Below are positions 3,702-62,472 of a DNA stretch of 64,000 nt, piece after piece. Origin of the DNA: Paramoeba atlantica. Its lineage: Eukaryota; Protista; Discosea. The notes under the pieces are model-generated. The model was not told the origin of the DNA, made no database searches, and worked only from the letters and a program-made list of their open reading frames with translations. A program made the position numbers and the translations under genes. How positions within the stretch are numbered: the stretch's first letter is position 1; each line of letters begins with the position of its first letter. The stretch spans positions 76,250 through 140,249 of the forward strand of contig CDRNVI010000062.1 in NCBI GenBank assembly GCA_977017575.1, read 5' to 3'.

Positions 3702-4205
3702 TTAATGCCTTTCCTTCATCAATTCTTCAATGAATGCCCTGCCCTTCTGACGGCGGCGTTTTACCTCATCTGAAAGCTCCTGATATTGTTTGGCTGTAAG
3801 CAGCTTATATTTGGCAGATATTTTCTTTTGCACAGCTCGGAAACAAGCCCTCGGATTCTTGTGGTTTCCCTTCTCCGCTTTATATATCGCTGTCATGAAC
3901 ATTTTTACAAACAAAGAGTATGGAGTAATTCGCGCACAATTCACCCGAGCTTTAAGCGCTTTTTTTCGCTTCATATTCTCGGCAGCAGTCTTACTGAAGG
4001 ACTGGACTTGAGAAGGAGATAATTTTTTAAAAGCGGCATGTGCTCCGGCGAGATTTGGGTATCCCTTTTTACCTTTGCAAAACTTTGCTATAAATACACG
4101 CAGCGCACTTGTCGGGGCCGACTTCCCAGCCCACGGTTTCTTGATAACTTTAAGACGAAGCTTTGCGATGTTCTTGGCGAGCTTTGGAAATACACGAGCA
4201 AACAT
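3702..4205 (-). CDS. Basic tandem HMG-box-like protein, kinetoplast-associated protein (KAP)-like, copy 1 (167 aa)
   Basis: MFARVFP presequence-like start; two degenerate HMG-like repeats (PTSALRVF...AFKKLSP; PYSLFVK...KISAKYKLL); Lys/Arg/Ala-rich; the ATG that aligns with the paralogues is at 4205. Confidence 0.8.
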   Translation of the reverse strand: MFARVFPKLAKNIAKLRLKVIKKPWAGKSAPTSALRVFIAKFCKGKKGYPNLAGAHAAFKKLSPSQVQSFSKTAAENMKRKKALKARVNCARITPYSLFVKMFMTAIYKAEKGNHKNPRACFRAVQKKISAKYKLLTAKQYQELSDEVKRRRQKGRAFIEELMKERH

Positions 4206-4425
4206 TAGAGGTGGAAATACAATAAAAAGGAGAAATAGAACTGCGTTCAAGAAAGAAGACTTAACTTAGTGTAACATGAGACCTTCTTAAAAAGTACGAA
4301 CAGATTACAATGTACGATGTACTGAAGTTATGAGATTGCTGTGACATCTATGATTTCTTCTACTGGCGATCCTATCGATAATGAAGAGCTACCTTTCTTA
4401 GACTAGTGCGGTTCTAGTTACAAAA

Positions 4426-4719
4426 CATGTTCCAGGATTATTTCCAGGATTTATACCTAGTAGGTATACTAAGTAGGTACGGTATACTAAATTTTCTTTA
4501 AAAAGCAAAAAATTAAAATTTTTCGCGCCGCTTCGCGGAGCTTTCCTTCTCTGTAGTTGCTAGAAAAAAGGTGCCTTGGTCTTCAAATAAGATTTCTTAG
4601 CTGGGGCTTGCTAGAAAAGTTACTCTGTCGCTTCTAAAAATGTGACGTCTCTCGCTTCTGTTGTGTTGAGGGGGGCGTAGGTATTCTAAGTGGGCATGGG
4701 TATACTATCCTGGAACACG
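4426..4719. mobile_element. Small non-autonomous inverted-repeat element (TGTTCCAGGAT family)
   Basis: CATGTTCCAGGAT...ATCCTGGAACACG ends; the same terminal motif recurs at 17009-17116 and 22381-22420. Confidence 0.5.
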
Positions 4720-4754
4720 GCTTAAGAAACCTTAAGCCTGTACTCATACCTACA

Positions 4755-5580
4755 TAGTAAAAGTCACAATTCTGAGAATCACTAAAAATGAGAATTGGGC
4801 TGTCAACGTGCAACTAGGAAAAATGAGAATGTTATTAAAAAATGAGAATGCGTCTCTGCATGACCATGTTAACGTGCAACTCCATTTGAGAATCAAAAAT
4901 GAGAAAGGCCAAAAAAGTTTCATACAGCTTCTGCACTTCCTCTTTATACCTAATATATTACTCCCCCCATATCCTAGCGTTGCCTCGTTTGCCTTCAGTG
5001 GAAAGGCGTACCGTTGCTGAGACAGGAAAAGAATTTATACGACTTGCAGCGGCCACGGTTCTTGGAAAAGGGGGGCTTCGAATGATGTACTTGCTTATCG
5101 GCCTACGATTTTCCAGGGAATGTTCAAACACAGAGATAATAATTCGAAAATCGTAATTTAATGAGACTTATAGCTAAAGCGTATAACAACATGGGATTAA
5201 TAAATTGATGAAATCACTAAAAAAATCATGAAGATAAAATTCGGGAAAAAATGAATTTCACTGTCTCATATTCACTCTCTTTCCATAGAGTTCTTCTTGG
5301 GCTTCGCTAGGTTCATTAACAAAGTTGTCGACGTCAATGAGGACGTGCTGCTGCAGAGGGTTTTTATTTATATTCTTCCATGTACCTCCCTTTTTTGTGG
5401 CTACCATTTTTTTTTTAGAAAAAAGCAAATCAGTAAAAATGAGAATCCATTCAATTTCTACCAAAAAAGTGCTGACAACGTGCAACAGGTCAATTCTGAG
5501 AATTGTGACGAAAATTTGCAAAAGTGCTTTTTTACGCGGCAATGTGCAACTGACCATTCTCAGAATTGTGACTTTTACTG
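4755..5580. mobile_element. MITE, CAGTAAA family (diverged copy)
   Basis: TIRs (T)AGTAAAAGTCACAATTCTGAGAAT / ATTCTCAGAATTGTGACTTTTACTG; subterminal AAAATGAGAAT repeats shared with 8233 and 17932. Confidence 0.75.
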
Positions 5581-5762: not shown

Positions 5763-7610
5763 TCATTCTTCCAACATACATGTATACAGCATCGTGTCGT
5801 GCCTTGTGCTTAACCCCGAAGCGCCCCGAAATGAAGTCACCGTAAGGTTTTGCCACACGATAGAACCGTAATTATCGGGTATCTCACCCTTTAAGAGCCG
5901 AGACACCTCAGGGCGAGAATGCAAGGGACCCCATATCGTTAACGGAACCCGTACATCCAAAACAGACACGTTTTGAAACTCCACCTCCTCTGTCCTATTC
6001 CCATCATGAGGGAGAGGGGAGGAGGTGCTGTTTTCATTGTTCTTTCCATTACTCCCCTTCTCGTTGTCTACGGGTGGGACCAGCCACACCCGGGAGAGCA
6101 GTACTTCCCGTCCATCCCGAGTACGTATGAGCTCCCCGACAACGGAGACACACGCGACGACGGCCTCCACACTCACCACAGTCCCCGAGGGGATCTGGGA
6201 GAGTTTGTACAGCGCCGTGAGCTCGTCCACGTTTTGTTCTTTTTCATTTTCGTTTTGTGTAAATTCATTTTGTATAAATATTTTATTTCGGTATTTTTCC
6301 CCCCGGGAGTGGGCGAGTCGTTTGTTGTGGGAAGCCTTTTTATTCTTTTCCCCCATAGGACTCCAAAACCGTTTTTCGGGAAAGAATTTATTCTTTTTAT
6401 TCTCAAGAACAAACCGTCCCGAGGAGGGGTCAACCTCCCAATGGTTGCCATGAGCATCCGTGAGAACTATATTGATTAAAGAAGTCGAAGTCGAAGACTC
6501 AGCGTCTTCTTCTTCTTCTCCTTTTTGTTGTGCAAACAAAAGAGAGTGAATGGAGGCGTTTTGTCGAAACCAATTCGCACAGGTAAAAGGTACGAATTCT
6601 GGTGTTTCATTTCTGGGATTTGCTCCTCCCAAAAGAGCCCAACAAGGGGCAGGGGTCGCTACCCCGGGTGTCATCCTCGAGGAGATCACCCAGTGGTTGT
6701 GGGACTCGAAAAGGCTGCGCTCGTCGAGGGCGAGTATCAAAAGTACGGGGTGATACTCACTTTTAGAAAACTCTTTTTTTTGTGACTCGAGGTCGTTTTC
6801 TATTCTTTTGTTGGTTTCGATATCGGGTTCGTTTTCGACCCCTTTGAATTGCTTCCCCCACGCGGTGTGCTCTGGAGAGCTGATCTCACGGTAGAGCAGC
6901 ACCGCGTGGGTGATGGTGAGAACAGTGCCAATGGCAATCACCTCACAGGCGGTGATGAATTTCGTGCTTAACGAGGCGCACAGAAGTGCGTCACAGCCGC
7001 AGCAGCCGTCCCACAGGGTGAGACGATACCGCAACTCGGGTTCTGTTTTTATTTTGATTTGTTTAATGTCTACAACTTGTAGCGTGATGGGGTGAATCGG
7101 GGAGGGGTAGAGGGCAAGGAGGTGAACCGTACCGCCTGCAGCCTCCGCTTCAGGCAGACATGCCTCGTGGTTGTCCGAAGTGACGGAGAGTTGCGGAGCG
7201 CGACACGATTTTCTCAGGTAGGTGGTTTCGCGCAAGCACAGGTTGTGATATTTCTCAACGAGGTCCATTACTTGACTTACAAATGCGTAACATGACGCGA
7301 GGTAATCTTTATAGATATCAAGGCTTCCTGATTTTCGGTGTTTCGTGGAATCCATATTCGAAATTTTACTTTTCGCCGAGTGGGCAGAATCTTTCTCGGT
7401 AGTGATTTTGCGTTCGAAGAAACTGGAAGTATGAAGTCGTTGGAGAACACCTTGCACAAGGTAAAGCACTGGTGCGATTGAGACGGATCGAGGTTCTGAC
7501 CAGATAAATGGATCGTCCGCATTTTCCGCAGCAACTGAATCTTCTGCTTTATCAGAGAGAGTGATGTGATGGTGTGTGACACAATGAGCAAGACAAGGAG
7601 TAAGGCTCAT
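5763..7610 (-). CDS. RPA1-like multi-OB-fold protein (615 aa)
   Basis: LQVVDIKQI...RYRLTLWDG...IGTVLTI resembles the RPA70N OB fold; the C-terminal VVACVSVVGELIRTRDGRE...VPLTIWG...VTSFRG resembles an ssDNA-binding OB fold; long intact ORF co-oriented with host genes. Confidence 0.6.
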   Translation of the reverse strand: MSLTPCLAHCVTHHHITLSDKAEDSVAAENADDPFIWSEPRSVSIAPVLYLVQGVLQRLHTSSFFERKITTEKDSAHSAKSKISNMDSTKHRKSGSLDIYKDYLASCYAFVSQVMDLVEKYHNLCLRETTYLRKSCRAPQLSVTSDNHEACLPEAEAAGGTVHLLALYPSPIHPITLQVVDIKQIKIKTEPELRYRLTLWDGCCGCDALLCASLSTKFITACEVIAIGTVLTITHAVLLYREISSPEHTAWGKQFKGVENEPDIETNKRIENDLESQKKEFSKSEYHPVLLILALDERSLFESHNHWVISSRMTPGVATPAPCWALLGGANPRNETPEFVPFTCANWFRQNASIHSLLFAQQKGEEEEDAESSTSTSLINIVLTDAHGNHWEVDPSSGRFVLENKKNKFFPEKRFWSPMGEKNKKASHNKRLAHSRGEKYRNKIFIQNEFTQNENEKEQNVDELTALYKLSQIPSGTVVSVEAVVACVSVVGELIRTRDGREVLLSRVWLVPPVDNEKGSNGKNNENSTSSPLPHDGNRTEEVEFQNVSVLDVRVPLTIWGPLHSRPEVSRLLKGEIPDNYGSIVWQNLTVTSFRGASGLSTRHDTMLYTCMLEE

Positions 7611-8232
7611 AACACAGTCATAATATACGATTTAGGTTGTATGCAAACGAAAAAAGGAAACAAATTTTACGCAAAAGAGTGTGAGAGTGTGAGGGAGAAA
7701 AAATATTTCAAAGTTGGCCACGTTATACAAATTTTGTGCGCCCTATATTTTCGTACCCACCCCCGTAAACGGGAGTACAACTAATGTACAGGACCTGTAC
7801 ATTACAGGGCCCTGTTACGTTACATGTATGAAATTCCGGTAATTCGTTTTTTGAGTACTCAACGAAGATACCCAACCCAAAAAATAATTTTCATTGCACT
7901 GTACTAAGTGTTCTGCCTTTTAAACTAAATACCTGTATAACAATTGACCTCTCTGACATTAATTTCTTTGTTGGCTGTATTTTCTGTTTTCTTAAGGTGT
8001 ATGTTCGACTACGACCTTACTCCGAGCAACGATGAATACGTGGATGACGATCCCGATTCTTCTGATTCCGAGAGGTACTTGACTTTGAGAAAGTGGGTGG
8101 CTTGCTCTATTCAAGAAGCGTTCCGCATGCCATTAAGGTCGGAAACTTCAGTGGAGTTTTTACGTACACATGAGTAACGCCGAAAAGAACGCAACCAAGT
8201 ACTCCCCTGAGCGACGGCCTCCACCGGTACTA

Positions 8233-9274
8233 CAGTAAACGTCACTATTCTGAGAGTCGCTAAAAATGAGAATTGGACTGTCAACGTACAACTGGCTAAA
8301 ATGAGAATGCACCTTGGAAAATGAGAATGGAGCTTCGGTCATGTGTCAACGTTCAATTCAATTTTACACTCAAAAGTGAGAATTGAAAAACAACGCTTTC
8401 GTTCTCTCACTGATTAACTCACTGCTTCATCTTCACTAACTGGAGAGTATGCGAGAGATCGGTGGAAATCACTGGGGATACCGTATACTCCCCCAGTAAT
8501 GGACCCCCCAGTAGCAGAGATTTCGCCATTTTTGGGCCGACACACAGTAACAAGGATTTGTCTCGGGAGGGTGGTTGGAGGGGGGGTGTCTGGACAGGAT
8601 GAGGGTGGTTGTGCAGTAGCGAATCGCGTGGTTTCTGGGTTGGCTGTACAGAAAATCAACGCACTCATGAACGAAAAAGGCCTTTGCCCACCGAAAAAGC
8701 ATACCCCACCCAGTAACAAGGATTTGGCCTTTATGGTCCAAAATCGATTCTATTACTGGGGGGGTATAGGTAGGTGGAGATAGATGGGGATCACAGGGGA
8801 TCACTGCAGATCATTTTTATCGTTGTCCCTTCTCTTCTTCCATTCATGAAAGGCACACAAATATCTTAGTGAGACCAAAAAAGAAAAGAAAACACTGATT
8901 TAGGTGACTACAAGTAATGAAACTTTGTTTTTCTGAAAACAAAACGCTAATACACAAAAGGAAAACTTGTGCTGTTTGACTGCGCGGTGTTCTTCTGATG
9001 AAGAAGAACTCCTTGGTTCTGCAAACCAAGGAGATAGTGGGAGATCTCTGGGGGTCATTTTTGTGCACCCAAAGCGGCCTGCTGCTCCGCTGCTAATATT
9101 TTTCTTGCAAAACGTTTTCTTTTTTAAAAATGAGAATTATGATTTGACCTCATAAAAAAGTGCCTGTCAACGTTCAACAGACCAATTCTGAGAATAGTGA
9201 CGAAAAACGACAAAAAAGCCGTTTTTTCTGTGTCAACGTACAACTGAGCATTCTGAGAATAGTGACGTTTACTG
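8233..9274. mobile_element. TA-flanked MITE, CAGTAAACGTCAC family (Tc1/mariner-type ends)
   Basis: TA-CAGTAAACGTCACTATTCT...AGAATAGTGACGTTTACTG-TA; near-identical reversed copy at 17932-18835. Confidence 0.85.
8481..8770. mobile_element. TA-flanked MITE (CCGTATACCCCCCAGTAAT family) nested in the 8233 MITE
   Basis: TA-CCGTATACTCCCCCAGTAAT...ATTACTGGGGGGGTATAGG-TA; further copies at about 18347-18620 (ends lost) and 48251-48564. Confidence 0.85.
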
Positions 9275-10530
9275 TAATCCAGCGAATGGAAGACAACATC
9301 GTTGCTTTGTGCGCTGGGTAGATGAGCCTGCGACTGCGCCAACTCTCTGATCCGGAAAGCAACGTTCTCAAATCCTTGTGCAACGTCCCCGTGGATGAGA
9401 ACATGTTGCTGCACGGTCTTGTGCTCTTGACAAAGTCCCGGGACACGGGTTTTCTCTTTTTCAAGGACGTGGAGTAAAGGTGGAAGAGGTGCCCGGGCAT
9501 GGGCGGTGGACGCAATCGACTCAGACATGGTCGCTGAGCTTCGCTGATGCTTCAACCGACGTCATCGCTGGTCACATGAAAAATTTCCTGAAGTAAAAAT
9601 ATGGAGGATTTTATAAGGACACGAATCAGGATCGCGAAGTTTTGGCCCATTGGTTCAAGACCATGTGGCTATAGTTGCGTGACAGCAATGTCCAAGATGG
9701 CAAAGTTCACTGGGACCGGAACAAGAAATTGAAGGAGGAAGTGGAAGAAAGTAGTACGCGCACTGAAAGCATCGTGTGTGCGCTGGTGGGTGGATCGCCC
9801 CCAATATTACAGGGACTCTATTGAAGAACTGAATCAAAGCGATCCCCGAGTTCTCAAGCGGAAGTCCCGTGGGACGCACTCCTGTAAATTTTACTAAGAA
9901 GATCATGAGGATCAAGAAGCCATTCAGCAATACCGAGTGCATGTTAAAACATCCATACACCCCCGTTCATGCCATATTGTTACAGTTTTCCTGGACGTAT
10001 GAGGTGCGCTAAAGGGGAAATAATGTCTGTTTTGAAGAGATCTCGGCAGGGGCTCCCGAGGAAAAATATTGCAAGCAACTGAAATATCGCATTGTGGAAT
10101 CTTGTGTCGACCTAAAAAGTTTATTTTGACTGAACTTGTGGAACCTTCTGTCGACCTAAAAAGTCAATTTTGACGGAAACTTTTGTTGGAGAAGACGGAA
10201 AGGATGAGTCAGAAGAGGAGCATATTTCTACAACTTCTACAATCTATTAAGATGAGACGGTCAGCGCCAGTACCACCTGAAAGATGACTGTTCCAGAGAA
10301 GGCCACAAGGAGCTCCCGACCATTCTTTCCCATGCTGAGTGTGTCCGGCATCAGTGAAATTTAAAAATTTGATTATAAAAATAAATAAATCTTTCTTAAA
10401 TACGGATCTTACTATCATACAAAGGTAGCTACTATAATCTATCTATTTATCTCACGAAGGAAATACCAAAAGGGATTGTATCCTTTTCCCCTCCCACATA
10501 ATGCCCATACACTGTGCTAATGTTAAAAAG

Positions 10531-13762: not shown

Positions 13763-13775
13763 ACCAAACATTCTA

Positions 13776-14901: not shown

Positions 14902-15846
14902 TTACTTTCGCGGTTCCTGAAAATGAAACCTTTGCGCGCCACATAGCGCCATGGTACGGTCAAAAATCGCAAACTGCCCCGCCGTCAGGGCACCAATCAT
15001 CACACAACGCGCCCCGAGTCCCTGCACACACAATGTTCGAAACCCCGTCGCCTTTGCGAGCCGTACCAACCGCGTGGGAATACTCCCCTCCCCCCCGGCG
15101 TTCGGGGATTTATTAATCTTCGACAACAACGTATCGGCGGGATGCGAAATCACCGCAGCCGCAATCCCCGCCACCAACCCCGACCCCACCGCCACCGCCA
15201 TATGCTGCCCCCCCGTCACCCTCCCCGGGTCCACCCCCCCGACGCGGTACATCCCCTCCGCGACCCGTCCCTGCACCGCGAACTTCGCCATCGTGTACGG
15301 GACCTGTTTCAGCACGATCGGGCCCAGCCCACGGTAGAACCCCCGCACCACCCCCTCCGCGGCATAGATCCTCGGCACCGCCGCGACCATCCCGGGCGCG
15401 AACCCGGGGTCCGCCACGAGACGGATCCGGGTCGCCTCCAGGGGGCAGAGGAAGAGGTCCGCGACCGTCTCCGCGACCGCCGCGGAGGCGAGATCGATCG
15501 CGGTGCGGTGCCCCCACGCGGCCTCCCCCCCGAGCCGGGCCGCGGCGGTGGTCCTCAGCAGCTCCACCCCGCCGAACTTGAGCCCGCCCTGGAGGAAGTA
15601 CCCGAGGGCGGTGGGGCCGAGCCCGAGGGCCAGGGCCCCGGGGCCCTCGGCGCGGACGACCTGGGAGAGGGCCGCGAGGACCCCGGGGGGGTAGCGCCCG
15701 GGGTGGAGCTGCATGCGGGTCTTGACGACGTCGAGGGGGCAGACCGCGGCGTGGGTGAGGCTGCAGCAGAGGCCACCGGCAAGGCCGGCTTTGAGGTAGT
15801 AACGGGCGTCGTAGGGGGGGGTGGTGGTGGGGGGGGGGAGGGACAT
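14902..15846 (-). CDS. SLC25A3: Mitochondrial phosphate carrier (SLC25 family)
   Basis: CSLTHAAVCPLDVVKTRMQ, LGYFLQGGLKFGGVE, CPLEATRIRLV, KQVPYTMAKF and SHPADTLLSKIN are phosphate-carrier signatures; very GC-rich. Confidence 0.95.
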   Translation of the reverse strand: MSLPPPTTTPPYDARYYLKAGLAGGLCCSLTHAAVCPLDVVKTRMQLHPGRYPPGVLAALSQVVRAEGPGALALGLGPTALGYFLQGGLKFGGVELLRTTAAARLGGEAAWGHRTAIDLASAAVAETVADLFLCPLEATRIRLVADPGFAPGMVAAVPRIYAAEGVVRGFYRGLGPIVLKQVPYTMAKFAVQGRVAEGMYRVGGVDPGRVTGGQHMAVAVGSGLVAGIAAAVISHPADTLLSKINKSPNAGGEGSIPTRLVRLAKATGFRTLCVQGLGARCVMIGALTAGQFAIFDRTMALCGAQRFHFQEPRK

Positions 15847-18835: not shown

Positions 18836-19014
18836 TATCTCCCTAGTCCACTTCAGCCTGGGTATAAAATTTGTCCAATGGTCCAATGGGGCTTGGCGAT
18901 CCCAATCTCCCAAGCTAACACACGTAGTAAGTCAACGAAACAAGACGCTAAAGAACTAGGGTAAGTCATATCAGAGAGCAATAGAAAATCATGAGAAAAT
19001 GAGGAGAAGTGTGC

Positions 19015-21549
19015 TCATGAAGTGAGCTTAGTTAAGACACTTTTTAGCACATGGGCCATTCCTGCTCTAACGCTTTTTTCCACCATCAGTTGTAGATGCG
19101 AACGATACAGAATTCCACTTAACCATAGTGGGGACCCAGGCTCGGTCTTTGTACTTTCCGTAACAGAAGTTTCATCCTTTTCTCCCCAAGAGAATTCGCC
19201 TACCTCTCGAAATTTCTCAGGAAGAGCCTCGTGCGAGAGCTCCAATGAAATCCACACAGGACCGGGGGAACAGCAGGAATCAAAATCCTCTTCACCCGGT
19301 CCGCACAACAACCTTTCGTCCTGCAAAAGAGTGAGCATTTGCGCCGGTTTCTGCAAACGTACCACACGACGCTGGTCCGTGTGGGGGGCTACCCAACGAG
19401 CTGCCTCAAAGGTAGGACGCCAGGAAAAAGCTTCATAACCTTGGTGCACGTTTGATTTGTACAATATCCCCCCCTCTGTTTCCGAACGCTCCTTGATAGA
19501 GGTAGGTGGCAATTGTTTGTCTACTGTCGTTACCTCCCTTTCGCCAAGCTTCGTGTTTGTCCCCTCCACTTCTTTTTCTCGCCCTTCTTTTCTTTTTTCA
19601 TTGATTTGGAACGCACGAACCCCACACATGGTGATCACCTCCTTGGCCCCTTTATACACCCAGGCATGAAGCATCACATAGGTGCTAAGGGTAAGGCACA
19701 TCACCCTTTTGGGTTCCGAGGGAGTGTGGTCGGTGCCATGTACGACGAGACAAAGCCCCTGTTCGTGTCGTAGTCTCACGGCATCAAGGCCATAGAAATG
19801 TTGAAAATAGTGAATCTCGGATTCGGTGAGATCCCGGTACCGTCGGTACCCACCCCAGTGACCGTAAGGGGTGGTTTTAAAAACAGAAAGAGGAGTCACG
19901 GTGGAAGGAGAAACCGATGGAGTACTATCGGAGCCATTGGACAAACCAAATGGGGGACAAGGCTCTGTGTATCTTCTCCTTTTTTCGTTTCGCACTTCAG
20001 GAGAGGAAGGAGGGCAGGTTTCGCCCCCCTCCGAAACCTCCTGCGCGTTGCGCACAAAAAGGGCGAGAAAAAACCCGCCCGTGTTCTGGGTGTGCGGTAA
20101 CACCCGACCACACATTCTAACCACTTCGTGGTAGCTCGGCGCATTCTTTTCACAATCCTCCCATTTGGCGTTTTCATCCTCTTTATCCGCTATTCTATCC
20201 TTTCCAGCCTCCTTTGGCACCGCGAATTTCACATGCGGCAGCATTTCCCGCACATTGACCAGCCTCACCGATAAAAACGAGCGTTTCACCTCTTGCAACA
20301 CCTTCCACACCACCTCCTCGTTCTCTACCGGATTCATACTACACGTGCTGTACACCAGCACCCCCCTCTCCTGCAGTCTCTCCAGTCCCCTCCTCAAGAT
20401 CTCTTGCTGTGTTTTTTGTAAATTTTTTCCATACCCTTCCTCCCATCTCGGGAGCACCGTATTGTCCTTTCGTGTGGTCCCGTCTCCGGAACATGGCACG
20501 TCACACAGAATGCTCGAAAATTTGATAAAACATTTTAAAAGAGTAGAATATAAAAAAGGAAAACGACGAGCGTCCCCGCGGGTACAAAACACCCACGGGC
20601 TCTGGGCTCTTTTGAGTCGAGCCGGGAGAAGCTGTGTCGCCTTGGTGTGGTCTTTTTCGTTGCACACCAAAACACCCTTTTTTTGAATTCCCAAAAGAGA
20701 ATCTAAAAAATGAAGGGATTTGGATCCCGGAGAGGCGCAAAGGTCGAGGGAAAAGGAATAGAGAAAAGAAGCAGGAAGAGAGGGCGTTTTTGTGTTTGGA
20801 GAGGAAGGTAGAGGGAAAAGATCGTTTTTTTCGGAGAGCGGATGAAATGCAGATGTGCTGAAATTCGAATCCTCCCTTTTTACGTCTATCGAAGAAGACA
20901 CAGATAATGGATGGCTTTTTTCAAGAGGAGAGGAATGTCCGGAAATAAGATGATTCGAAGGACTTATTTTTGTACCCATTGGAGAAGGCACCGACGAAAC
21001 ATCCCCTTTTTCAGGGGAAGAATTATCTCCGGAAGTAGGACGCTCCGAATCATCTACTTTCGTCTCCATCGAAGTGGGCCCGGACAAACCATAAGTCGAT
21101 GGCAGCTCCGATAAGGAACGAGTAGCGGAGAGCAGTAAGTTCACTGGTAACATTGAGACGGCCTCCTGAAATGTCAACAGACCGGCACTGTGGAGTGTAG
21201 TCACCGTTTCATGGGTGTTGGGTTCGTCAAACTTTGTGTTGCTACAAGAAACGGCATGGGAAGGGAAGACACAACAAAGCGGCGTCAGATGGTGCGTCTG
21301 GACAAGGATGTGACACACGAGCCAGTGCCAGGGATGGGAGAGGGTCAGACGAGCGGTCATGGGGAGCGGCTCCGTGAGCATGTGGAGAAAGTTTTCCCAC
21401 TCGGCAGGAGAGTGGATAAAGTGGTCCAGAACGATTCGGTAGTACGACAGAAAAGACTCCGAGGGGGCGACCACAGCGATGTTGCGACGGCGTGAAAGAC
21501 GTTCGTCTCGCTGAGAGGCGTAGAGGGAAGGGGTGCTCTCGGAAGCCAT
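19015..21549 (-). CDS. NSUN2: RNA cytosine-C5 methyltransferase, NSUN2/Trm4 family (844 aa)
   Basis: LDLCASPGSKS (motif I), CDVPCSGDGT (motif IV), YSTCSMNPVENEEVV (motif VI) and RVLPHTQNTGGFFLA. Confidence 0.92.
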   Translation of the reverse strand: MASESTPSLYASQRDERLSRRRNIAVVAPSESFLSYYRIVLDHFIHSPAEWENFLHMLTEPLPMTARLTLSHPWHWLVCHILVQTHHLTPLCCVFPSHAVSCSNTKFDEPNTHETVTTLHSAGLLTFQEAVSMLPVNLLLSATRSLSELPSTYGLSGPTSMETKVDDSERPTSGDNSSPEKGDVSSVPSPMGTKISPSNHLISGHSSPLEKSHPLSVSSSIDVKREDSNFSTSAFHPLSEKNDLFPLPSSPNTKTPSLPASFLYSFSLDLCASPGSKSLHFLDSLLGIQKKGVLVCNEKDHTKATQLLPARLKRAQSPWVFCTRGDARRFPFLYSTLLKCFIKFSSILCDVPCSGDGTTRKDNTVLPRWEEGYGKNLQKTQQEILRRGLERLQERGVLVYSTCSMNPVENEEVVWKVLQEVKRSFLSVRLVNVREMLPHVKFAVPKEAGKDRIADKEDENAKWEDCEKNAPSYHEVVRMCGRVLPHTQNTGGFFLALFVRNAQEVSEGGETCPPSSPEVRNEKRRRYTEPCPPFGLSNGSDSTPSVSPSTVTPLSVFKTTPYGHWGGYRRYRDLTESEIHYFQHFYGLDAVRLRHEQGLCLVVHGTDHTPSEPKRVMCLTLSTYVMLHAWVYKGAKEVITMCGVRAFQINEKRKEGREKEVEGTNTKLGEREVTTVDKQLPPTSIKERSETEGGILYKSNVHQGYEAFSWRPTFEAARWVAPHTDQRRVVRLQKPAQMLTLLQDERLLCGPGEEDFDSCCSPGPVWISLELSHEALPEKFREVGEFSWGEKDETSVTESTKTEPGSPLWLSGILYRSHLQLMVEKSVRAGMAHVLKSVLTKLTS

Positions 21550-21921
21550 TTTATGGAGATCCCAGAAAGGTTTCTTACGGAGTGTAGTTTGAAACTATTT
21601 TTGTAGACTTCAATTTTTTTGAGTGACCCAAGAAATACGAAAATGTAGCTTTTGTTCTTATCCGCGAAATGATTCCTGCAAAAATATCCGGCAAAAAAGT
21701 ACCCTAAATTGACCCTTTTTTTGAGAAAAAAAATATTTTTTGTTTTGTTTTTTACAATTGTTTTTCTTATTTTTGAGTACATACAGGGGTGTCAACTTCC
21801 ATCTGGGGGGGTCTAAAATTTGTAAAACTTGGCCAAGTTCTTAACTTTTTACCAGAGCTTGATCTTTCGCCTTGACGTGGCGCTCTGAATTAACACCCCT
21901 TTCGAGCATAAGGCCGAAGGC

Positions 21922-22235
21922 ATGCAGGCCAAGGCCAAAAGTGTCCTTCAAGGCCCACCTCAAGACCAGTCGGCTAAAGATCCGCGACGCAACCTTTGCG
22001 AGGCGGCCCTAGGGAAAACTCCGCCCACCACGCAACTGGTCTGCATGCGGCAGATTCAGAACGTTCATTCCACAAAGTGGATGAATGCGTGGCCCAACCG
22101 GCCGGAATACTACATACGGGACCCGTAGTGCGAGACTGCGGCCCGTCTCCGGTACTTGGTCGCCCCTACCTCGTAGCCTGAGCTCCAGTGCGTGTGCGGT
22201 GCAATCCTCCGCAACGAGGAGTTTCGGGCCCAGAG
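21922..22235 (+). mobile_element. Fragment of a CRE-clade (SLACS/CZAR/CRE-like) non-LTR retrotransposon, post-RT region
   Basis: Reading through two stops: STKWMNAWPNRPEYYIRDP*CETAARLRYL...QCVCGAIL, matching the W..A.P.....RLRL...C.CG pattern that precedes REL endonucleases. Confidence 0.55.
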
Positions 22236-24217: not shown

Positions 24218-24249
24218 TATAAGTAGAAAGACAGGGAAAAAGATAATCT

Positions 24250-25815: not shown

Positions 25816-25841
25816 GATAATCTTGTAGGATATAAATTACG

Positions 25842-26205
25842 TTTACTTTCTTTTTGCTTTTATGTGGAAAAAAGAGCTCTTAGATGTAGTTTATCGGTAA
25901 CCCGGGGAACGGTATATTATTCAAATCGGAATTTGAATAATACTGTTACACTGCCGACTAATATTATTGAGTTTTTAATTATAGGCAAAGCTATGCAACT
26001 TTTAATTAAAAAATCAATAATTTTTGTGCCAATAATTTTTGTAGAAATTTGTACATATCGACAAACAATAGAAGTTGTTAGTAGAGGGGCGGAAAAACCC
26101 AAAATTAGGTCAAAAGTTATATTTGCTCTCAAAAAGATTCAAGAATTTTTACGGGGAAGAAAGTTGTTTTTCACCAAAAAATTATTATACCTAGGAGGTA
26201 CAATG
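25842..26205. repeat. Copy of the CCCGGGGAACGG element left end plus flank
   Basis: Near-identical direct repeat of about 28311-28675; diverged inverted copy at about 34400-34670. Confidence 0.7.
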
Positions 26206-43698: not shown

Positions 43699-44202
43699 TT
43701 ACTTTCTTTGTTCCACCAGCTTTTCAATGAGTGCGTTACCCTTCTTACGGAATTGTGCTGCCTCAACTGAAAGTGCCTTGCGTTGAGCGGCTGACAACTT
43801 CTGGTATTTGGCAGATACTTTCTTTACCGCAACTCGGAATAGCACCTTTCGATCTTTGCAGTTTTTCTTTTCCGCATTGTATATCGCTGGCATGTTACGC
43901 TGCACGAACAAACTATAAGGATGACATTTAGCACTTTGAACTTGAGCTTTCAGTGAATGTTTTCGCTTCATATTCTCGGCAGCAATCTTACTGTAGGACT
44001 GGACCTGAGCTGGAGATAACTTTTTAAAAGCGGCATGTGCTCCGGCGAGATCTGAGAATCCCTTTTTACCTTTGAAAAACTTTGACATAAATACACGCAG
44101 TGCACTTGTCGGGGCTGATTTTCCAGCCCACGGCTTATTGATAACTTTACGACGAAGCTTTGCGATGTTCTTGGCGAGGTTTGGAAGCGCACGAGAAAAC
44201 AT
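43699..44202 (-). CDS. KAP-like tandem HMG-box protein, copy 4 (167 aa)
   Basis: Intact paralogue; aligned ATG at 44202. Confidence 0.85.
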   Translation of the reverse strand: MFSRALPNLAKNIAKLRRKVINKPWAGKSAPTSALRVFMSKFFKGKKGFSDLAGAHAAFKKLSPAQVQSYSKIAAENMKRKHSLKAQVQSAKCHPYSLFVQRNMPAIYNAEKKNCKDRKVLFRVAVKKVSAKYQKLSAAQRKALSVEAAQFRKKGNALIEKLVEQRK

Positions 44203-52599: not shown

Positions 52600-53750
52600 G
52601 TGCCTTTTTGATGCGGAGGAGTTTATAACTACCGCTCTGCCCTCGATTATTGAAAAAACAGTGAACAAAAACAGTGAAAATATAAAGAGGAACACAGTAA
52701 TATCATAGAAGAAAAAAATATTAAAGGGGGCCCCGGTGGTCCAAAACTGAAAAAACCAATTCAAAAAAATGGGGCGTCCATGGGGGGGTCGAGGGGGGGG
52801 GCATACGTCGCGAATTTTTTTTTCGAATTTTTTGCTTTTCAAAATCGAGCGCAGGGAAATGATAGAGTAGGCCGCGGCGATAATTTTCCACCCCCCCCCT
52901 GGGGGTACCCCCCCCGGTACGCGGAGGAGGGGTCCGACATGGCCAAAAATTACAAAATTTTTGGGGTGACCCAAAAAAAAGAAAAAATATTATTTTTCCA
53001 AAATCGACTTCTAAACCGTATTTAGAGAGTTTTGGACCTCAGCTAACATTCTGCGACGTTTGGTTCGACAGATTCACCTCCTGCCCCTACTGGTAAGGCA
53101 TCCAAAACGACCCAAATTCGGGTTACAAATTCGCAGTTTTCGCCGGAAAATCGAGCTTTTTTACCCGATAAAATAGATTATTCATCATCTTTTACCGATT
53201 GTTCTTTTTTAGGCTCTTCGTTAAACGCGGTGGTAGTTTTCAACGTGAAGCGCGCAGCATGAGTGACTTCTAAGTTGAAAACAACCACCGCGTTCAACGA
53301 AGAGCCTAAAAATTGTATTAACAATAATAATAATTAACGGAATATTTTTTTGGGAAGAAATTATTCCGTTAATTATTATTCCAATGATTTTTACTAAATT
53401 CCTAACAAACTTTAAGCGCCAAGATACAACTTGTATATTCTCAAAAACTCTTCAGAACGTTGCGGGTTCGGTGCGGGTATTACAACAATCTTCTCAAAGC
53501 AAGCGAACTCTTCAGGCATTCCAGGAACTGAAGTAGAAAATTAGAGAGAGAACACGACTCCAACCACACCATTCTTTCGACACAAAAAGGCCCCTTGGGG
53601 TCCGAAAAATAATTTTTCACATTTTTTTGGTCAAAAATGGGTCATTTTCGCGGGTTCTACCGCTTCTGAAGTTTATTTTCGAAAAATAATTTTTACAAAA
53701 AAAATTTCGTGCGGTATGCTCCCCCTAGACCCCTCATGTTTTTCATTTTT
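52600..53750. repeat. Diverged foldback-type repeat centred on the hairpin at 53207-53311
   Basis: 52600-53310 is an inverted homologue of 57995-58910; 53555-53670 is a direct homologue of 58280-58390. Confidence 0.6.
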
Positions 53751-53897: not shown

Positions 53898-54401
53898 TTA
53901 CTTTCGTTGTTCCACCAGTGTTTCAATGAATGCGTTGCCCTTCTTGCGAAGTTGTGCTGCCTCATCTGAAAGAGCTTTGCGTTCAGCGGGTGGTAGATTC
54001 CTGTATTTGGCAGATACTTTCTTTACCGCCGCGCGGAAACAATCCTTAGGATTCTTGTGATTTCCCCTCTCCGCTTTGTATGTCGCTGACATGGTACGCT
54101 TTAAGAACAAGTTATAAGGTCCGTAGTGTGCGCTTTTCATTTGTGCTTTCAGCGCTTTCTTCCGTTTCATATTCTCAGCAGCAATATTACTCAAGGACTG
54201 GACTTGAGCTGGAGTTAATTTTTTAAAAGCGGCATGAAGTCCGGCGAGATCTGGGTATCCCTTTGTACCTTTGCAAGATTTTGACATAAATACACGCAGC
54301 GCACTTGTCGGAGCTGATTTTCCAGCCCACGGATTATTGATAACTTTACGACGAAGCTTTGCGATGTTCTTGGCGAGGTTTGGAAGCACACGAGTAAACA
54401 T
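53898..54401 (-). CDS. KAP-like tandem HMG-box protein, copy 5 (167 aa)
   Basis: Intact paralogue; aligned ATG at 54401 (MFTRVLP). Confidence 0.85.
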   Translation of the reverse strand: MFTRVLPNLAKNIAKLRRKVINNPWAGKSAPTSALRVFMSKSCKGTKGYPDLAGLHAAFKKLTPAQVQSLSNIAAENMKRKKALKAQMKSAHYGPYNLFLKRTMSATYKAERGNHKNPKDCFRAAVKKVSAKYRNLPPAERKALSDEAAQLRKKGNAFIETLVEQRK

Positions 54402-55678: not shown

Positions 55679-57408
55679 CTAATATCGAATCTTGTGCCCA
55701 TTGGCAGCAATACACACTTCTAGCCGTTTTTCGAACGTGCTGTGTAACTTCTTGGCCGTCACCCTGCCTTCAAGAGAGAGAAAATAACTTTGCGACACTC
55801 TTTTTATCTCCTCAGAAGTCCGAGGAAAGGTCTGGTTCTTTGCGTGTCGAATTCTTGCCCAAAAGTTCTCTATAGAATTCAAATCCGGGGAGTCTGCAGG
55901 CCATCTGAAAGGATTCTTGTCCCCTGAGTAGGGCATGTACCGCAAACATTGTGCGCAATGTCCGGAAGAGACATGCGCGTTCCACCACAGCTGAGTCTTC
56001 TCACTCGTGTGTGGAGAAGCCCCGTCATCCATGTAAACGGCGGTGGAGTTCAACTCACAGTATCGAGTCCACTCCGTATCGAGGATTTCGCGACGATAGT
56101 ATAGACTCCCCAATTTCAACTGATCAGGAAGCGTTTCGCGCTTTTCTCCAGGGCGCAGGGGGCGGCTTAGCTCGTTCGCATAGAAAGTAGAGAAATTGTC
56201 GCACCAGTGAAAGATAAAGGTTCCCTCTTTATCGATACCTCCCCATATCATGACCTTAATGGGATGGAAATCTCGGTTGCGCGCAACTCGATCATAATGA
56301 CTCTGCCAAGTAGACGTGGAAGAATCCCCTTCACAGATAAACGTTTCATCAGTAAAAACAAGGCTCTCAAAAAACTGTCCTTCCGTTCGTTCATTTTCCT
56401 GAAGCATCGCCTTACAAAAATTTACGCGGGCCTCCCGCTTCCGAGCACTGAGATGCAGTGTGCGTTTCTTTGACCCATATGAGTAATCATAGTAGTAATG
56501 CAACGCACGCATTCGATGACGTGAAACTTGGATGGATCCCTCGCTTAAGTTTACCATAGCCCTACGTAGGTAATTGAGGGATCGGTGTACCGGATGCTTT
56601 GCCATAACGCTGGCAAAAAGATCCTTGGCCTCTTCGGCGCTACTCCATCCCGATAGAGTTCGACGAACTTTCTCAACTTTTTGCACGCGCAGCGTAACAG
56701 TTATGGACTGGCCGTCAATTTTTCTAATCAAGCGACTACATGTTTGCTTGGGCAAAGTAAACATGTAGCAAAGATCCGCTTGACAGAACAAACCTGTTTG
56801 ATATAAACCTTTTAAAAGAAACAACCCAGACTCAGTTAAACTGCCAGGCTGTTTGAAAAGAACAGTTAAGTGGCGTTTTCGTTGATTTTTCTTTTTCGTC
56901 GGACGACCCCTTTTCTTTCCTACGTTTGGCTCTTTTTTCTCAAGCAGTGACGCGCTACGGACCTCAGTTAATAAATGAAGTGTTTTTTGCCTCTCGTTTG
57001 ATAAATTAGTGAAACGTGTTTTCAAATCCTGACACTCTGCGCGAGCTTTGCATTATCCTGCTTTAAAATTTGCACTTTTAGTTCCATTTCTGTTCTCCGC
57101 GTTTCGGCCTCCATGAAGTCCTCCGCACTCTTAGCTCCACGCTTCTCAAGAGTCCTAACCTTTCTTTTGGTCTTGCAGAGTTTATTACGCAGCCTCTTGA
57201 TAATTGCATCCTTGGCATTGATTTTTTTCTCCAAGGACTTCAATTGTTCGTCACTTGGATCTGAAATTAACTGTGTAACAGGTGCTTCCTTTTCAGGGGA
57301 CAAAGCGTCAAGGCTGGTGTCGTCATCAGCTCCGCGCGATACATCGGAGTGCAGACCCTTTATTTCCCCTACCGCTTCTAGAAGCTTTGCGTCTAACCCA
57401 GGCGACAA
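55679..57408 (-). mobile_element. IS630-Tc1-mariner transposase, DD51E, with coiled-coil/AT-hook N-terminus; one frameshift at about 57040
   Basis: 448 open codons with VFTDET, KVMIWGGI, YMDDGASPH and WPADSPDLNSIENFW; KKRGRPTKKK AT-hook; upstream ORF 57022-57408 is homologous to the coiled coil of 11554-12462. Confidence 0.9.
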
Positions 57409-57479
57409 TGGTCTATTTCCTTGGAATCGGCCTGGCGAAAAAGAAGGAACTGGCGAGCGGGCTGAACAGTGTACCCCGC

Positions 57480-57745: not shown

Positions 57746-57994
57746 AATTTCTATCAGATGCCTCAAAAATACGACCAGCTGCCCTTGGAAACTACACCCA
57801 TACGCAGTAGAGTGTCTCGCCCTAGGTGGAATTTTGGAAAAGTGTGCAAACTTCGTTCAATCTTGTGGGTTTAAAAATAATAAACCTCTATTTTTTGTGG
57901 AACTAAATTTTTTGCTCCCGCACCACAAAAACATAAATTAACGTAACTTTAATAAAAAAACTACGTACGAGCGCCAAGATCCGTCATAACTTTT

Positions 57995-58910
57995 TTATTC
58001 TCTTCGTTAAACGCGGTGGTTGTTTTCAACTTAGAAGTCACTCACGCTGCGCGCTTCGCGTTGAAAACTACCACCGCGTTTAACGAAGAGACTAAAAAAG
58101 AAAATTTAGCCTGGAAAGCTGAAGAAAACGGAAAGATTATAGCCAAAAATAGCCGATTTTCGGGTAAAAAAGGGGTCATTTTTGCGTATTTTTGCTCTCA
58201 GAGCACTAAATCCGATATTTGCGTGTGAGAAATCACTCTTAGGCGTGAATGAAAGCCTACTGAACGCATTGGGTAGAGAATGCGACTCAAACCACACCAT
58301 TCTTTGGCATAAAAAGACTCCTTGAGGTCCGAAAATTACATTTTCACCTTTTTTAGTCAAAAAAGGGTCTTTTTGAGGGGCGCACCACGGCTCGAAGAAT
58401 GGATATCTTGCGAAAACAACGGTGTGGACAGCTAGTATAGGGCACAAACTATAAAAATACAATAGGGCAAAGGATTTTGGAAAAATATTTTTTTTGCCAT
58501 TTTTTCCGCCAAGTTGAAATTTAAAAAAAAAAAATCCGAAAAAATCCGAACTTGGCGGACCCGTCCTGCGGATACGCGGGGGGGTCACCCCCGGGTAGGG
58601 GGGTGGAAAATGCGCGCCAAGACCCCGGTTACCCCTCTGCGGTTTTTGTTCGAAAAATATTTTTTACGAAAAAAATTGCTCGACCATGACCCCCCCTGGA
58701 CTCCCCATTTTTTTCAATTTTTTTTTCAGTTTTGGACCACCGGACCCCCTTTTATATTTTTTTCTTCTATTATAAATTCTTTTTTTTATGATAAATTCTT
58801 TTATTACTGTGTTCCTCTTTATACACTGTATACACTGTATTTCTTTATACACTGTATTTTCACTGTTTTTGTTCACTTTTTTTCAATAATCGAAGGTACA
58901 GGGGTAGTTG
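57995..58910. repeat. Inverted homologue of 52600-53310, including the hairpin at 58000-58090
   Basis: Shared CAGTTTTGGACCACCGG, CACTGTTTTTGTTCAC and hairpin sequences in opposite orientation. Confidence 0.65.
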
Positions 58911-59172: not shown

Positions 59173-60168
59173 ATGACAAACCAACAAGATCCCCTTAACG
59201 GAAACCCGGATGTCATGCTCCGTAGTTTTATTGCTCTTTTGGAGGCGACGACTTACCGAGAGCATAGGCGTGGCCCACTTGGGGACGCCCCAGCCACAGT
59301 TCAAGACCCCAGCCTTCTCAATCCTGCGCTCTGGCGTGACGTACCTTTACGTCCAGTTTGTACTCAGTGTCCTGCGTTCAACTGCGTGAAGCGTTGGAGT
59401 AGTGTCGCAGATATCCCCCTTGGTGCGGACGCCGAGGGTTGGATGCGGAATCACGGTTTTCTTTATCCCCCCTCTAGTCCGAAGCACGGTGTTGCGCGTA
59501 TGGTGGACGTTCCTGGAAAGTCCCATATGCAAATCTGCAACCACTGAGAGTCTGGCTCTCGAAATGCCTGCAGAATCAAGAAAGGCAAATTCGAATCATA
59601 CATTTCCATGCGCAGCCATCTCACTCCAAGTATTCTCTTACTCGTCTGGGACGACATCGCGAATCAGATGTGTACCATCCAGATTTGTCATAATAGAGGG
59701 GTGGGTCGCAGAACTGTGCAGGAGGTTCTGCACTCCGCGGCGGATGCAGCCCTTGCTCAAGAGCAGATGGAGCAATACGAATTTTCCCGAATTCAGGTTG
59801 ATGAAACCTGTATAGGGAAACGGAAATATCAGCGGGGGAGGCGACAGCGCAAACGGGGGTGGTGGTTTGCGACAGTGACCGAGATCCGAGGTCAAGAAAT
59901 GGGAAGAACCCATCGGAAGCTAGTGAAACGAAGAGATACGGAAACTCTTCACAACTTCATTCTTCCGCACTTGACAAGTGCGAGGGCTGTCGTGGTTAGC
60001 GACTGTTGGGGGATGTACACCACTTTGGGTGACTTTTGTCGCCACCACGCTGTGAATCACAGCGTGGAGTTTGTGAACTCCTAAGGGTACCACACGAACA
60101 CCGCTGAAGGGTCACATCGTATCATAAAGGACTGGGTGCGGAAACAGCACTACAATTTGAAGAAATAG
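59173..60168 (+). mobile_element. Merlin/IS1595-like transposase pseudogene, full length, two in-frame stops
   Basis: One frame from ATG 59173 to TAG 60166-60168 with TGA at 59545 and TAA at 60082; motifs IQVDETCIGKRKY, VVSDCWGMY, VNHS and HTNTAEG. Confidence 0.88.
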
Positions 60169-60857
60169 CACTACAATTGAAGAATAACTAACTTGAAGAC
60201 ACTTACATTCTTAGCCCTGAAATCAAAAAAAAGTCAAAAAATGAAAATGTATGGATAAATAGCTCTCTAGCCTTTGGACCAAGCAGGGGTTTCTATAGCA
60301 GGGGTTTCTATAGGTGGGTCGGTGGAGCGTCACATCAAGAAGCACTTAGGGCAGCTTCACAGATCGGAACAGGTTGCCAACACTCTATTTGTTGGGGCGC
60401 AAGCTTCGCCGTCTGTGGTTACTATTCCGCACGTTGGAGTTAAACTGTGCAAATCTCTTCGGATTCGTGGTCGGCGCCCTTAATGGCGGCAATCCAACCG
60501 CGGCCGATCAACGATCCCCAACAGAGTCCCCATCCGACTTCGCCCTCAGATAGTCAACAAGAGGCGTCGGTATGGGGATTAGGAAGCAGACCTCGTGGAA
60601 GGGCACTCTCACTCAGGTTACATTTTGACCTTGTGTGAGCGGAAGATCCGATTCCCCGTTCTGCGTATTCTACGATCGAAGCATGCCGAAGAAGTGACAA
60701 ATCAAATCATCAAGGGATTAAGAAAGAACATAATTTTTACTATCAGTTGTGACGATGAAACGGAAGTTTCAAAGCGCGAAAGAGCGAATGAAAATTGGGA
60801 TGTAAATCATTTTTCAGTGCTCCGTATCACTCGTGGAAAAAGGGGGCTGTGGAAAAT

Positions 60858-61327
60858 TCAAAAGTCAACAAGGTAAAGAAGAGGTACAGATGAGCTACGA
60901 AAGCCTCTCGAAGTGACGTGAGATTTTGAAGAAAGGCTTGGGGTAAGCAGAGCGTTTTTTGACGTAAGTTTACTTCGACTCCTAGAATAGTACTGCACCA
61001 AGAAGGCTAAGTGGTAACGACAAGGTCCGCACCTACACTGGCTGCGTTTGGTAAAAACATTGAAAATCTCGCTGCAATGTAACCTGATCTTTCGAAAATA
61101 AGTGTCCGTTGTCAATGAACGTCAGTAATCCGGCGTTACCACTGTATAAAACATTCGTTGCTGCGTGGGCAATTTTGACGGATGCATGTCAGCCCATTTG
61201 TAATGTGGTCCAACCGTGGGTGCGTCCTTTGATCCTGACTGTGAAATATGATTGCAATATCATCATACCCCATTTATAATTTCAAGACCGCACGGAGAGC
61301 GCGGTTAACGCCACCCGTATCCCCTCA
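60858..61327 (-). mobile_element. Relic of a TGAGGGG-family element: degenerate TIR plus a SWIM-like fragment
   Basis: AGACCGC...GCGGTTAACGCCACCCGTATCCCCTCA (61285-61327) matches the reverse complement of the 39944 end; CRCGPCRYHLAFL in ORF 60858-61115. Confidence 0.5.
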
Positions 61328-61968
61328 TTTTATTTGTTAAATGGTATGATTAGATTAAATTATATGATTAACCAAAGATGAACGGGCAAGGATGAGACCA
61401 ATTATTCTATGCGGGTTCAATGATTGAAACCAAAACATTGTTTTGGTAAATCAATGGGAAAATAAAACGATGATTCACTCTTCTACACTTTGATGTTATT
61501 CGAAAAATAGAAAAAAAGCACCAATTTAATAATTTTACCAGATACTAGTAAGCTTTTACTAGTAAGTCAGAGAACTACATTGTTGGAAAAATAGAGTACG
61601 ATTGTATTAATACTTTTTTTTCATTCATTATTCATGTAAATCTAGTGGCAGTTCATCGGTTCCCTATCACATGCGCATGTACATTGTATATCTAGATTTC
61701 TGCAATTGTTTTCGAAAAAAGCATAGGTACCGTATAAAAAACTAAAAATAATTGGAAAAATTAATTGCAGCTTACTCTTGAGCATACTTAGACTTCCAAT
61801 GTATTTACTTTAGAAAATCCACCTCCTCAATCTTGCACGATTATAAAAACCAAAAACAAAAAACGGATCCACAATTCATTTGTTCTCCAGCCTAATACGT
61901 TTGTATAATATCAGATGCATAGCCATTTCTAGAACAATTGGTTCTTATCGTCAAACAAATCGTAAAAA

Positions 61969-62472
61969 TTATTTCTTCTTCTCTACTAGCTTTTCAATGA
62001 ATGCCTTGCCCTTCTTACGGACCTGTGCTGCCTCAACTGAAAGTGCTTTGCGTTGAGCGGCTGACAACTTCTGGTATTTGGCAGATACTTTCTTTGCCGC
62101 CGCGCGGAAACAAGCTTTAGGATTCTTGTGGTTTCCCTTCTCCGCCTTGTATATCGCTGGCATGTTACGTTTCAGGAACAAGCTATAAGGAAGGTAGCGT
62201 GCGCTTTTCACTTGTGATACGAGCGCTTTCTTCTGTTTCAGATTCTCGGCAGCAATCTTATTCAAGGACTGGACTTGAGCTGGAGATAATTTTTTAAAAG
62301 CGGCATTTGCTCCAGCGAGATCTGGGGCTCCCTTTTTACCTTTGAGAAGCTTTGAGATAAATACATGCCGCGCACTTGTCGGGGCTGATTTTCCAGCCCA
62401 TGGCTTATTGATAACTTTACGACGAAGCTTTTCGATGTTCTTGGTGAGATTTGGAAGCGCACGAGAAAACAT
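61969..62472 (-). CDS. KAP-like tandem HMG-box protein, copy 6 (167 aa)
   Basis: Intact paralogue. Confidence 0.85.
   Translation of the reverse strand: MFSRALPNLTKNIEKLRRKVINKPWAGKSAPTSARHVFISKLLKGKKGAPDLAGANAAFKKLSPAQVQSLNKIAAENLKQKKALVSQVKSARYLPYSLFLKRNMPAIYKAEKGNHKNPKACFRAAAKKVSAKYQKLSAAQRKALSVEAAQVRKKGKAFIEKLVEKKK

Follow-up and report, generated by a model that had tools for sequence, protein, structure and literature searches.

Proteins with two high mobility group (HMG) boxes that package mitochondrial DNA are already known, among them TFAM, Abf2 and TbKAP6. Human TFAM and yeast Abf2p are highly basic, carry a presequence-like N-terminus followed by two HMG boxes and are encoded by single-copy genes. 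In kinetoplastids, a part in transcription is not to be presumed for such proteins. Trypanosomatid KAPs (TbKAP6, KAP3 and KAP4) are small basic proteins of the kinetoplast DNA (kDNA), with one or few copies of each type. TbKAP6 has two HMG boxes, and kDNA replication and maintenance depend on it (PMC7463775; PMC10374059); KAP repertoires vary and expand between kinetoplastid lineages (PMC5683618). The Perkinsela mitochondrion contains more DNA than either nucleus (PMC4669381). The window analysed here is a 64,000-nucleotide stretch of a Paramoeba atlantica assembly (GCA_977017575.1, contig CDRNVI010000062.1, positions 76,250 to 140,249 of the forward strand). It contains six genes, W1 to W6, of a family of twin-HMG-box proteins that probably serve to bind and compact the kDNA of a Perkinsela-like kinetoplastid. 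The family is of a known kind, the mitochondrial tandem-HMG packaging proteins, with an unusually large set of members, and is not a new type of system.

The six genes are all on the minus strand: W1 at 3702-4205, W2 at 23711-24217, W3 at 30704-31207, W4 at 43699-44202, W5 at 53898-54401 and W6 at 61969-62472. Each encodes 167 amino acids from the ATG, except W2, which encodes 168, and neither the list of open reading frames (ORFs) nor the translations contain a stop or frameshift, in agreement with the preliminary description of this DNA. All six proteins start with MF(S/A/T)R and 77 alignment columns are invariant. The copies were also correctly described as diverged, with protein identities of 64-84% among the six. 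W1 is the outlying copy (64-69% identity to the others; its allele is on C50, where C-numbers denote contigs of the assembly), and W2-W6 are 75-84% identical to W6. The window copies are alike in nucleotide sequence from 5-40 bp ahead of the ATG to, at most, 47 bp past the stop. The earlier statement that the copies share only short flanks thus holds within the window, but in some of them the flank shared with a paralogue of another contig is longer. As the host genes of the window are on this strand too, the six genes read in the sense direction of a single transcription unit.

The family proteins are about 19 kDa in size and extremely basic (37-43 lysine and arginine residues versus 4-9 aspartate and glutamate residues). 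The HMG fold that had been predicted for them was borne out by an AlphaFold2 model, by structural superpositions and by a profile match to TFAM, which together show a twin-HMG-box fold. The model of W6 (alignment of 22 family members; mean pLDDT: 84.9) has a low-confidence helix at residues 6-22, followed by two three-helix units in the HMG pattern (box A, residues 28-89 approximately; box B, residues 89-166 approximately). In structural re-alignments, each box fits solved HMG boxes at 1.7-2.5 Å. Box B superimposes on TFAM (1.7-1.9 Å, 69-71 residues, Z: 8.1-8.4). For box A the partners are an HMGB1 box (Z: 6.9) and UBF box 3 (Z: 6.4), and for the whole model Abf2p (121 residues, Z: 8.6). Rows 1-23 of the structural ranking are all HMG proteins and row 24 is Gcf1p, a mitochondrial HMG-box protein (Z: 4.8); the unrelated proteins below score 4.3 or less. 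Foldseek with the whole model gave no match at an E-value of 0.001 or lower, a poor result because the two boxes are flexibly joined; the HMGB1 tandem boxes, Abf2p and TFAM nonetheless rank at the top. A broad family profile that includes distant relatives (A4) matches both boxes of TFAM (E-value: 3.4e-13) and the A-B boxes of HMGB1 (E-value: 2e-12), and a narrow family profile has a marginal match to PDB sequences. The language-model neighbours are all HMG-box clusters. Although TFAM and Abf2p are the best profile and structural matches of the family and share its presequence-like N-terminus, two boxes and high basicity, their sequence identity to it is 10-16%, and the family proteins lack the long inter-box linker and the C-terminal tail of TFAM.

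Residues 1-30 of the family proteins include 7-9 lysines and arginines and at most one acidic residue. Their N-terminus (MFSRALPNLAKN) resembles that of the ATP synthase beta subunit of the same genome (MLSRLRVLAPRV), and the HSP60 of this genome, a matrix protein like the former, starts in a similar style with MHITQRFLST or MHRLSRSPHPRRR. The N-terminal segment is thus a putative mitochondrial presequence. The C-terminal end is a basic KKK/QRK tail and no acidic tail is present.

An exhaustive profile search of 1.84 billion representatives returned 58 matches, 30 of which were named or looked up. The named relatives include four proteins of Perkinsela sp. CCAP 1560/4 (KNH07353, KNH07949, KNH06511 and KNH05114), proteins of the free-living prokinetoplastids Apiculatamorpha (PhF-6) and PhM-4 and proteins of the diplonemids Rhynchopus, Flectonema, Namystynia and Diplonema. 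KNH07949 is annotated as a mitochondrial DNA packaging protein and KNH07353 as a high mobility group protein. Three Perkinsela proteins (KNH07949.1, KNH07353.1 and KNH06511.1; 171 aa) resemble the family in size, basicity, organism group and end-to-end homology. The hhalign comparison with KNH07949 has a probability of 96.5% (E-value: 9e-10) over 151 columns, starting at residue 1 and including the MFSR N-terminus. The Perkinsela homologues are also multi-copy (six members of one 90% cluster on at least three contigs). They differ from the family in sequence (about 28% identity) and in passing the Pfam HMG_box threshold, which the window family does not. They also differ in genome setting, as one Perkinsela copy lies beside a histone cluster while the window family occupies about 20 loci with transposon-filled arrays. 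The KNH07949 gene is located directly after four histone genes (7848-10516; LFNC01000091.1). A word-indexed search found the family itself and one EukProt entry, protein P0009 (EP00008 Paramoeba atlantica, MMETSP0151_2), and the same kind of search with profile A4 added only PhM-4 and no trypanosomatid KAP. A literature search found nothing on MMETSP0151 or on Perkinsela KAPs.

The preliminary description proposed that the family had undergone an expansion, and this is confirmed genome-wide. When the 45.7-Mb assembly was searched in six frames, 38 matches came up; all are free of internal stops and 33-35 are of full length, and the few fragments are on C71. Contigs were paired as haplotypes by nearest-neighbour distances (C62/C81, with W1/C50; C4/C9; C30/C3; C46/C71; and C28/C37). 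With this pairing there are about 20 loci per haplotype. The window has six of them and C4 five; C30, C44 and C28 have one apiece, and C71 has six as well as fragments. Closely spaced tandems are kept on C4 (574177 and 575228; period 1051 bp) and on C71 (1102 and 1401 bp). In the tree, W2-W6 group with the copies on C44 and at C4:564453, and W1 pairs with C4:575228. W3 and C4:564453 share 1185 bp at 92% identity, comprising 262 bp upstream, the coding sequence and 415 bp downstream. This shared piece is close to one tandem unit in size and so indicates copying at the DNA level. In C71:124500-131500, at position 4922-5401, the 5' half of a family member occurs as a cut-off duplicate, next to and upstream of the intact copy at C71:129021. 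The family has few broken remnants, and this is one of them.

Ratios of nonsynonymous to synonymous divergence (dN/dS; Nei-Gojobori) are 0.28-0.57 in all 15 pairs of window copies (mean 0.38), with no bootstrap 95% upper bound above 0.90. Every pair is therefore under purifying selection and none is near the value of 1 that had been named as evidence against a selected family. Between paralogues dS is 0.26-0.59 and between alleles it is 0-0.05, from which it follows that the duplications long predate both the haplotype split and the polymorphic insertions. Divergence is uneven along the gene. Codons 1-23 have a dS of about 0.06 and codons 24-50 one of 0.26, and further on it is 0.5-0.6, such that the 5' value is about 8-10 times lower than that of the rest of the gene. 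In all six copies the zone of low dS runs from about 30 nt upstream of the ATG to codon 50 (62323-62502 in W6). Compared with the diverged C71 clade, 5' dS is saturated (1.3). Constraint at the RNA level was considered for the low 5' dS and dropped on account of this saturation, which favours gene conversion, and the uniform head is likely to reflect partial conversion among the core copies.

W2-W6 extend over 38.8 kb, and the preliminary account of five genes in a transposon-stretched array of about 39 kb is upheld by the multi-copy transposons in the spacers and by allelic insertions. Over 16.6-64 kb of the window, contig C81, which represents the other haplotype, is 98-99% identical to it; even so, at least 10 large indels (0.26-4 kb) set the two apart. 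All of these indels are between genes and none touches an HMG ORF. The blocks found only in the window are about 0.95 kb, 4.06 kb (24250-28307) and about 0.26 kb, and those found only in C81 are 3.4 kb, 1.25 kb, about 0.9 kb, 2.26 kb, 1.2 kb and 2.46 kb. Because of these indels, the W2-W3 distance is 6990 bp in the window and 2673 bp in C81, and the W4-W5 distance is 10199 bp in the window and 14648 bp in C81. The 4.06-kb block starts 32 bp upstream of the W2 ATG. It begins with a Merlin/IS1595-type transposon (24250-25815, plus strand) that has 40-nt terminal inverted repeats and at least six more full copies at 99% identity in other parts of the genome; a single stop divides its transposase into two ORFs of the same frame (24395-24943 and 24944-25678). 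Through this insertion W2 may have been separated from the region of its original trans-splice acceptor.

Transcription is likely for several family members, because contigs of one sequencing run, probably of RNA (X1, from 2015; X-numbers denote sequencing runs), map to W2 and because the C44 copy is identical to MMETSP0151_2 protein P0009. X1 holds 9% of the words of window positions 19001-25000. Within this interval, X1 contigs are located solely on 23240-24145, which corresponds to the W2 coding sequence and about 470 bp of private downstream sequence, and two of the pieces are mismatch-free. The NOP2/Sun gene, the repeats and the Merlin element in the same interval have no X1 coverage, and three other runs cover all of 19001-25000 and behave like DNA. 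The segment 23240-23710 (minus strand), which is private to the W2 locus and falls within the X1 pieces at 23240-23755, is likely to be the 3' untranslated region of W2. One X1 contig end reads on into the 3' flank of W3 itself.

The proposed model for the origin and function of this family, which we consider reasonably probable as a whole, is as follows. The proteins, encoded in the nucleus by about 20 loci, would be imported into the single mitochondrion of a flagellum-less, Perkinsela-like kinetoplastid. There they would bind and bend kDNA without sequence specificity, and coating by them would compact the very large mass of mitochondrial DNA. At first the genes would have formed a tandem array, head to tail, in a minus-strand polycistronic unit, repeating every 1.05-1.4 kb or so. 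DNA transposons would then have filled the spacers in the window, in some cases very recently, while the ORFs stayed intact. Import, kDNA binding and a relation between copy number and kDNA mass are inferred, and a link to the huge kDNA of Perkinsela is plausible. That a nuclear HMGB role would already be filled by a separate TDP1-like gene, on C39/C40, counts in favour of the model.

A number of observations weigh against it. Single family sequences score 11-17 bits against Pfam HMG_box and HMG_box_2 (PF00505 and PF09011), below the cut-offs of 22.4-25.4. The presequence is a call from composition and resemblance. Transcript support is partial: X1 contigs cover W2 and reach the W3 flank and the C44 copy has its transcript, but X1 is only guessed to be an RNA run, and neither a spliced-leader junction nor a poly(A) site was observed in the contigs, which give no expression levels. 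(The 3' half of a trypanosomatid-type spliced leader had no match in the window, which is uninformative.) None of the 30 looked-up relatives among the 58 profile matches is a trypanosomatid protein; the term KAP-like, used in the preliminary description, is therefore an analogy. In small size and basicity the family resembles the KAPs. As other small twin-HMG genes are present in the genome, the W family need not be the sole or main kDNA packager. Those on C23/C14 and C34/C69, which by eye look nearer to classical KAPs than the W family does, could be the main packagers, in which case the W family would have another job. The position of a Perkinsela homologue next to a cluster of four histone genes could hint at a role in nuclear chromatin.

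Were this hint correct, the family would consist of architectural proteins of nuclear chromatin, either HMGB proteins or a substitute for linker histone, and the N-terminus would be a basic DNA-binding arm rather than a presequence. Tandem HMG boxes are also the architecture of HMGB1, whose A-B boxes score near TFAM, and high basicity would suit any chromatin protein. Nevertheless, the top profile match is the mitochondrial TFAM, and the first 30 residues are free of acidic residues in the manner of the ATP synthase beta presequence of the same genome. The family also has no acidic tail or DEK-C-like domain, with 4-9 acidic residues in all. A nuclear role is further weakened by the finding of other HMG genes, including a canonical TDP1-like nuclear HMGB at another locus (401 aa; C39/C40; single-copy per haplotype). 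Like kinetoplastid TDP1, this protein has two HMG boxes in common with the family (75-83 bits, both strong), but it differs in its DEK-C-like N-terminal region. Finally, the core histone genes of this genome are unlinked to the family: the six-frame search found no family member with the histone arrays on C21, C32 and C33. A nuclear function is thus unlikely. Those arrays (C21:421783-462325, C33:153066-176992 and C32:310232-317557) are clean tandem repeats of a 2.77-kb unit with near-identical copies and no transposon insertions. They show the form that a pure dosage array takes in the present genome, which the HMG array does not resemble, and this bears on another explanation. The family might be mitochondrial but made up of specialised paralogues rather than bulk packagers, with different members serving different classes of kDNA or different tasks (replication, segregation, transcription or RNA binding). 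Such specialisation would explain why the copies have stayed diverged and were not homogenised: they differ from each other at 16-36% of residues with each under purifying selection, and a uniform head (dS of about 0.06 in codons 1-23) is joined to a varied body (0.5-0.6). Moreover, TbKAP6 acts in kDNA replication and maintenance, beyond compaction (PMC7463775). However, mildly relaxed redundancy in a fast-evolving class of proteins would also account for a dN/dS of about 0.38 with nothing to suggest positive selection, and specialisation of the paralogues is an improbable but credible account. An extension of it is more doubtful still. Gene conversion would keep the end of the 5' untranslated region, the presequence and the first DNA-contact strand uniform while the HMG boxes diverge under selection, and about 20 distinct kDNA binders would partition a vast and heterogeneous kinetoplast genome into classes that are packaged or replicated differently. 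If true, this set with a constant head and a variable body would amount to a diversity of mitochondrial "chromatin" that is not known elsewhere.

Alternatively, transposons (Pack-type, foldback or Merlin-linked) could have carried the genes as cargo or accessory genes and multiplied them by transposition. Inverted repeat arms enclose W3 (28428-28785 and 34335-34671) and W5 (52701-53312 and 57990-58774), and the Merlin element abuts W2. These arms, however, are copies of high-copy elements that are spread over the genome, and past about 40 bp the window copies share neither flanks nor terminal repeats. The Merlin element beside W2 is missing from the other haplotype, in which W2 is still present, and its 99% copies are at none of the family's loci. 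The longer flank shared by W3 and C4:564453 (about 1.2 kb in all) is near the size of a tandem unit, and homologues are ordinary genes in Perkinsela, free-living prokinetoplastids and diplonemids. Transposons come and go between the haplotypes while the genes stay, and the arms are generic repeats. A cargo or foldback origin was therefore rejected as very improbable, because nothing shows a gene and its arms moving together.

With kDNA packaging as the favoured function, the family is a candidate set for the packaging of a Perkinsela-type kDNA mass that is far larger than the single-copy TFAM and Abf2, and its roughly 20 loci also exceed the one or few copies of each trypanosomatid KAP. The preliminary description regarded it as a candidate for undescribed biology. 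This was overstated, because a Perkinsela homologue is already annotated as a mitochondrial DNA packaging or high mobility group protein and because two-HMG-box mitochondrial packagers are known. What is new is the presence of about 20 diverged but intact loci, divergence to below Pfam thresholds, patchy concerted evolution of the 5' end and a haplotype-resolved view of a gene array stretched by active transposons. The comparison of haplotypes shows that such transposons can make a gene array three times as long and leave the genes undamaged. As the family scores under the Pfam HMG cut-offs, automatic annotation will label it hypothetical; a genome-wide scan with PF00505 recovered none of its loci.

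The host appears to be a Perkinsela-like, flagellum-less endosymbiont of P. atlantica and not a free-living flagellate. This assignment, which agrees with the kinetoplastid host of Perkinsela type proposed earlier, draws on gene content and on the amoeba source of the DNA. The kinetoplastid editing protein MRP is encoded in the genome (above the Pfam cut-off), and genome searches gave no match for the paraflagellar rod and only one weak locus like dynein heavy chain, with an open frame of 4576 aa on C14/C23; these negative results are weak evidence. As P0009, the EukProt entry of P. atlantica, is identical to the C44 copy, the genome comes from the culture of that amoeba. The haploid genome is about 23 Mb. 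The Perkinsela CCAP 1560/4 genome is 9.5 Mb, and the present one is much larger.

Small twin-HMG genes over the Pfam HMG_box threshold are located on C23/C14 (133 aa twice and 151 aa), C34/C69 (150 aa) and C53/C89. All have very short presequence-like starts. Their sites are C23:270600-282900, C34:65400-67600 and C53:829347-829814, with sizes of 133-191 aa, and some are duplicated. These genes may be the host's classical KAP-type genes. Kinship between the W family and the 133-aa twin-HMG gene of C23 was considered and rejected, since the two are unrelated at the profile level (probability: 2.4%).

The window also contains several host genes, all on the minus strand. A ribosomal protein L24e gene (62701-63099) is just upstream of the array, and a NOP2/Sun (RsmB/F) methyltransferase gene (19015-21549) is downstream of W2. 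A mitochondrial phosphate-carrier gene (14902-15846) encodes a protein about 60% identical to homologues of many eukaryotes. Between the array and W1 is an ORF with an RPA1 N-terminal-like domain (5763-7610), which scores 24.1 bits, just under the Pfam cut-off of 26.7. The six HMG genes have a GC content of 44-47%. They had been described as AT-rich relative to GC-rich host genes, which is correct with respect to the phosphate carrier (70% GC), but the difference is modest with respect to the RPA-like and NOP2/Sun neighbours (49-50%).

The array spacers contain further transposon sequences. A DDE_Tnp_4 (PIF/Harbinger-type) transposase ORF of 329 aa (32947-33936, plus strand) is located between W3 and W4, and a DDE_3 transposase ORF of 448 aa (55679-57025, minus strand) between W5 and W6. 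With transposase ORFs of this length in the array, the earlier statement that most neighbouring transposon ORFs are broken was not sustained. A 785-bp high-copy element (57990-58774) is also between W5 and W6, with an inverted partial copy at 52701-53312; it has 134 scored matches genome-wide and 1461 first-look candidates. A fragment of an IS1595/Merlin-type transposase is found at 59608-60084 (plus strand). Nine of 10 further spacer ORFs have no Pfam match. In contigs of the DNA runs X2, X3 and X5, 21751/21753 is connected to 24280/24285 through 5-13 other letters, so that W2 is skipped. Rather than a deletion allele, this is probably another copy of the flanking repeats at a different place in the genome.

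Two observations concern other parts of the assembly. Ten or so small contigs (C108, C113, C114, C116, C123, C124, C131, C133, C134 and C229) share a 463-aa ORF similar to an ATPase of the ATP synthase alpha/beta family (91 bits to atpD). They may represent an extrachromosomal or organellar element in many copies, or else a partner genome that was assembled along with this one. An HMG-box ORF at C198:39600-41600 has long acidic low-complexity tails (EKEGEK/EEKKE) unlike the rest of the genome and may come from another organism in the assembly.

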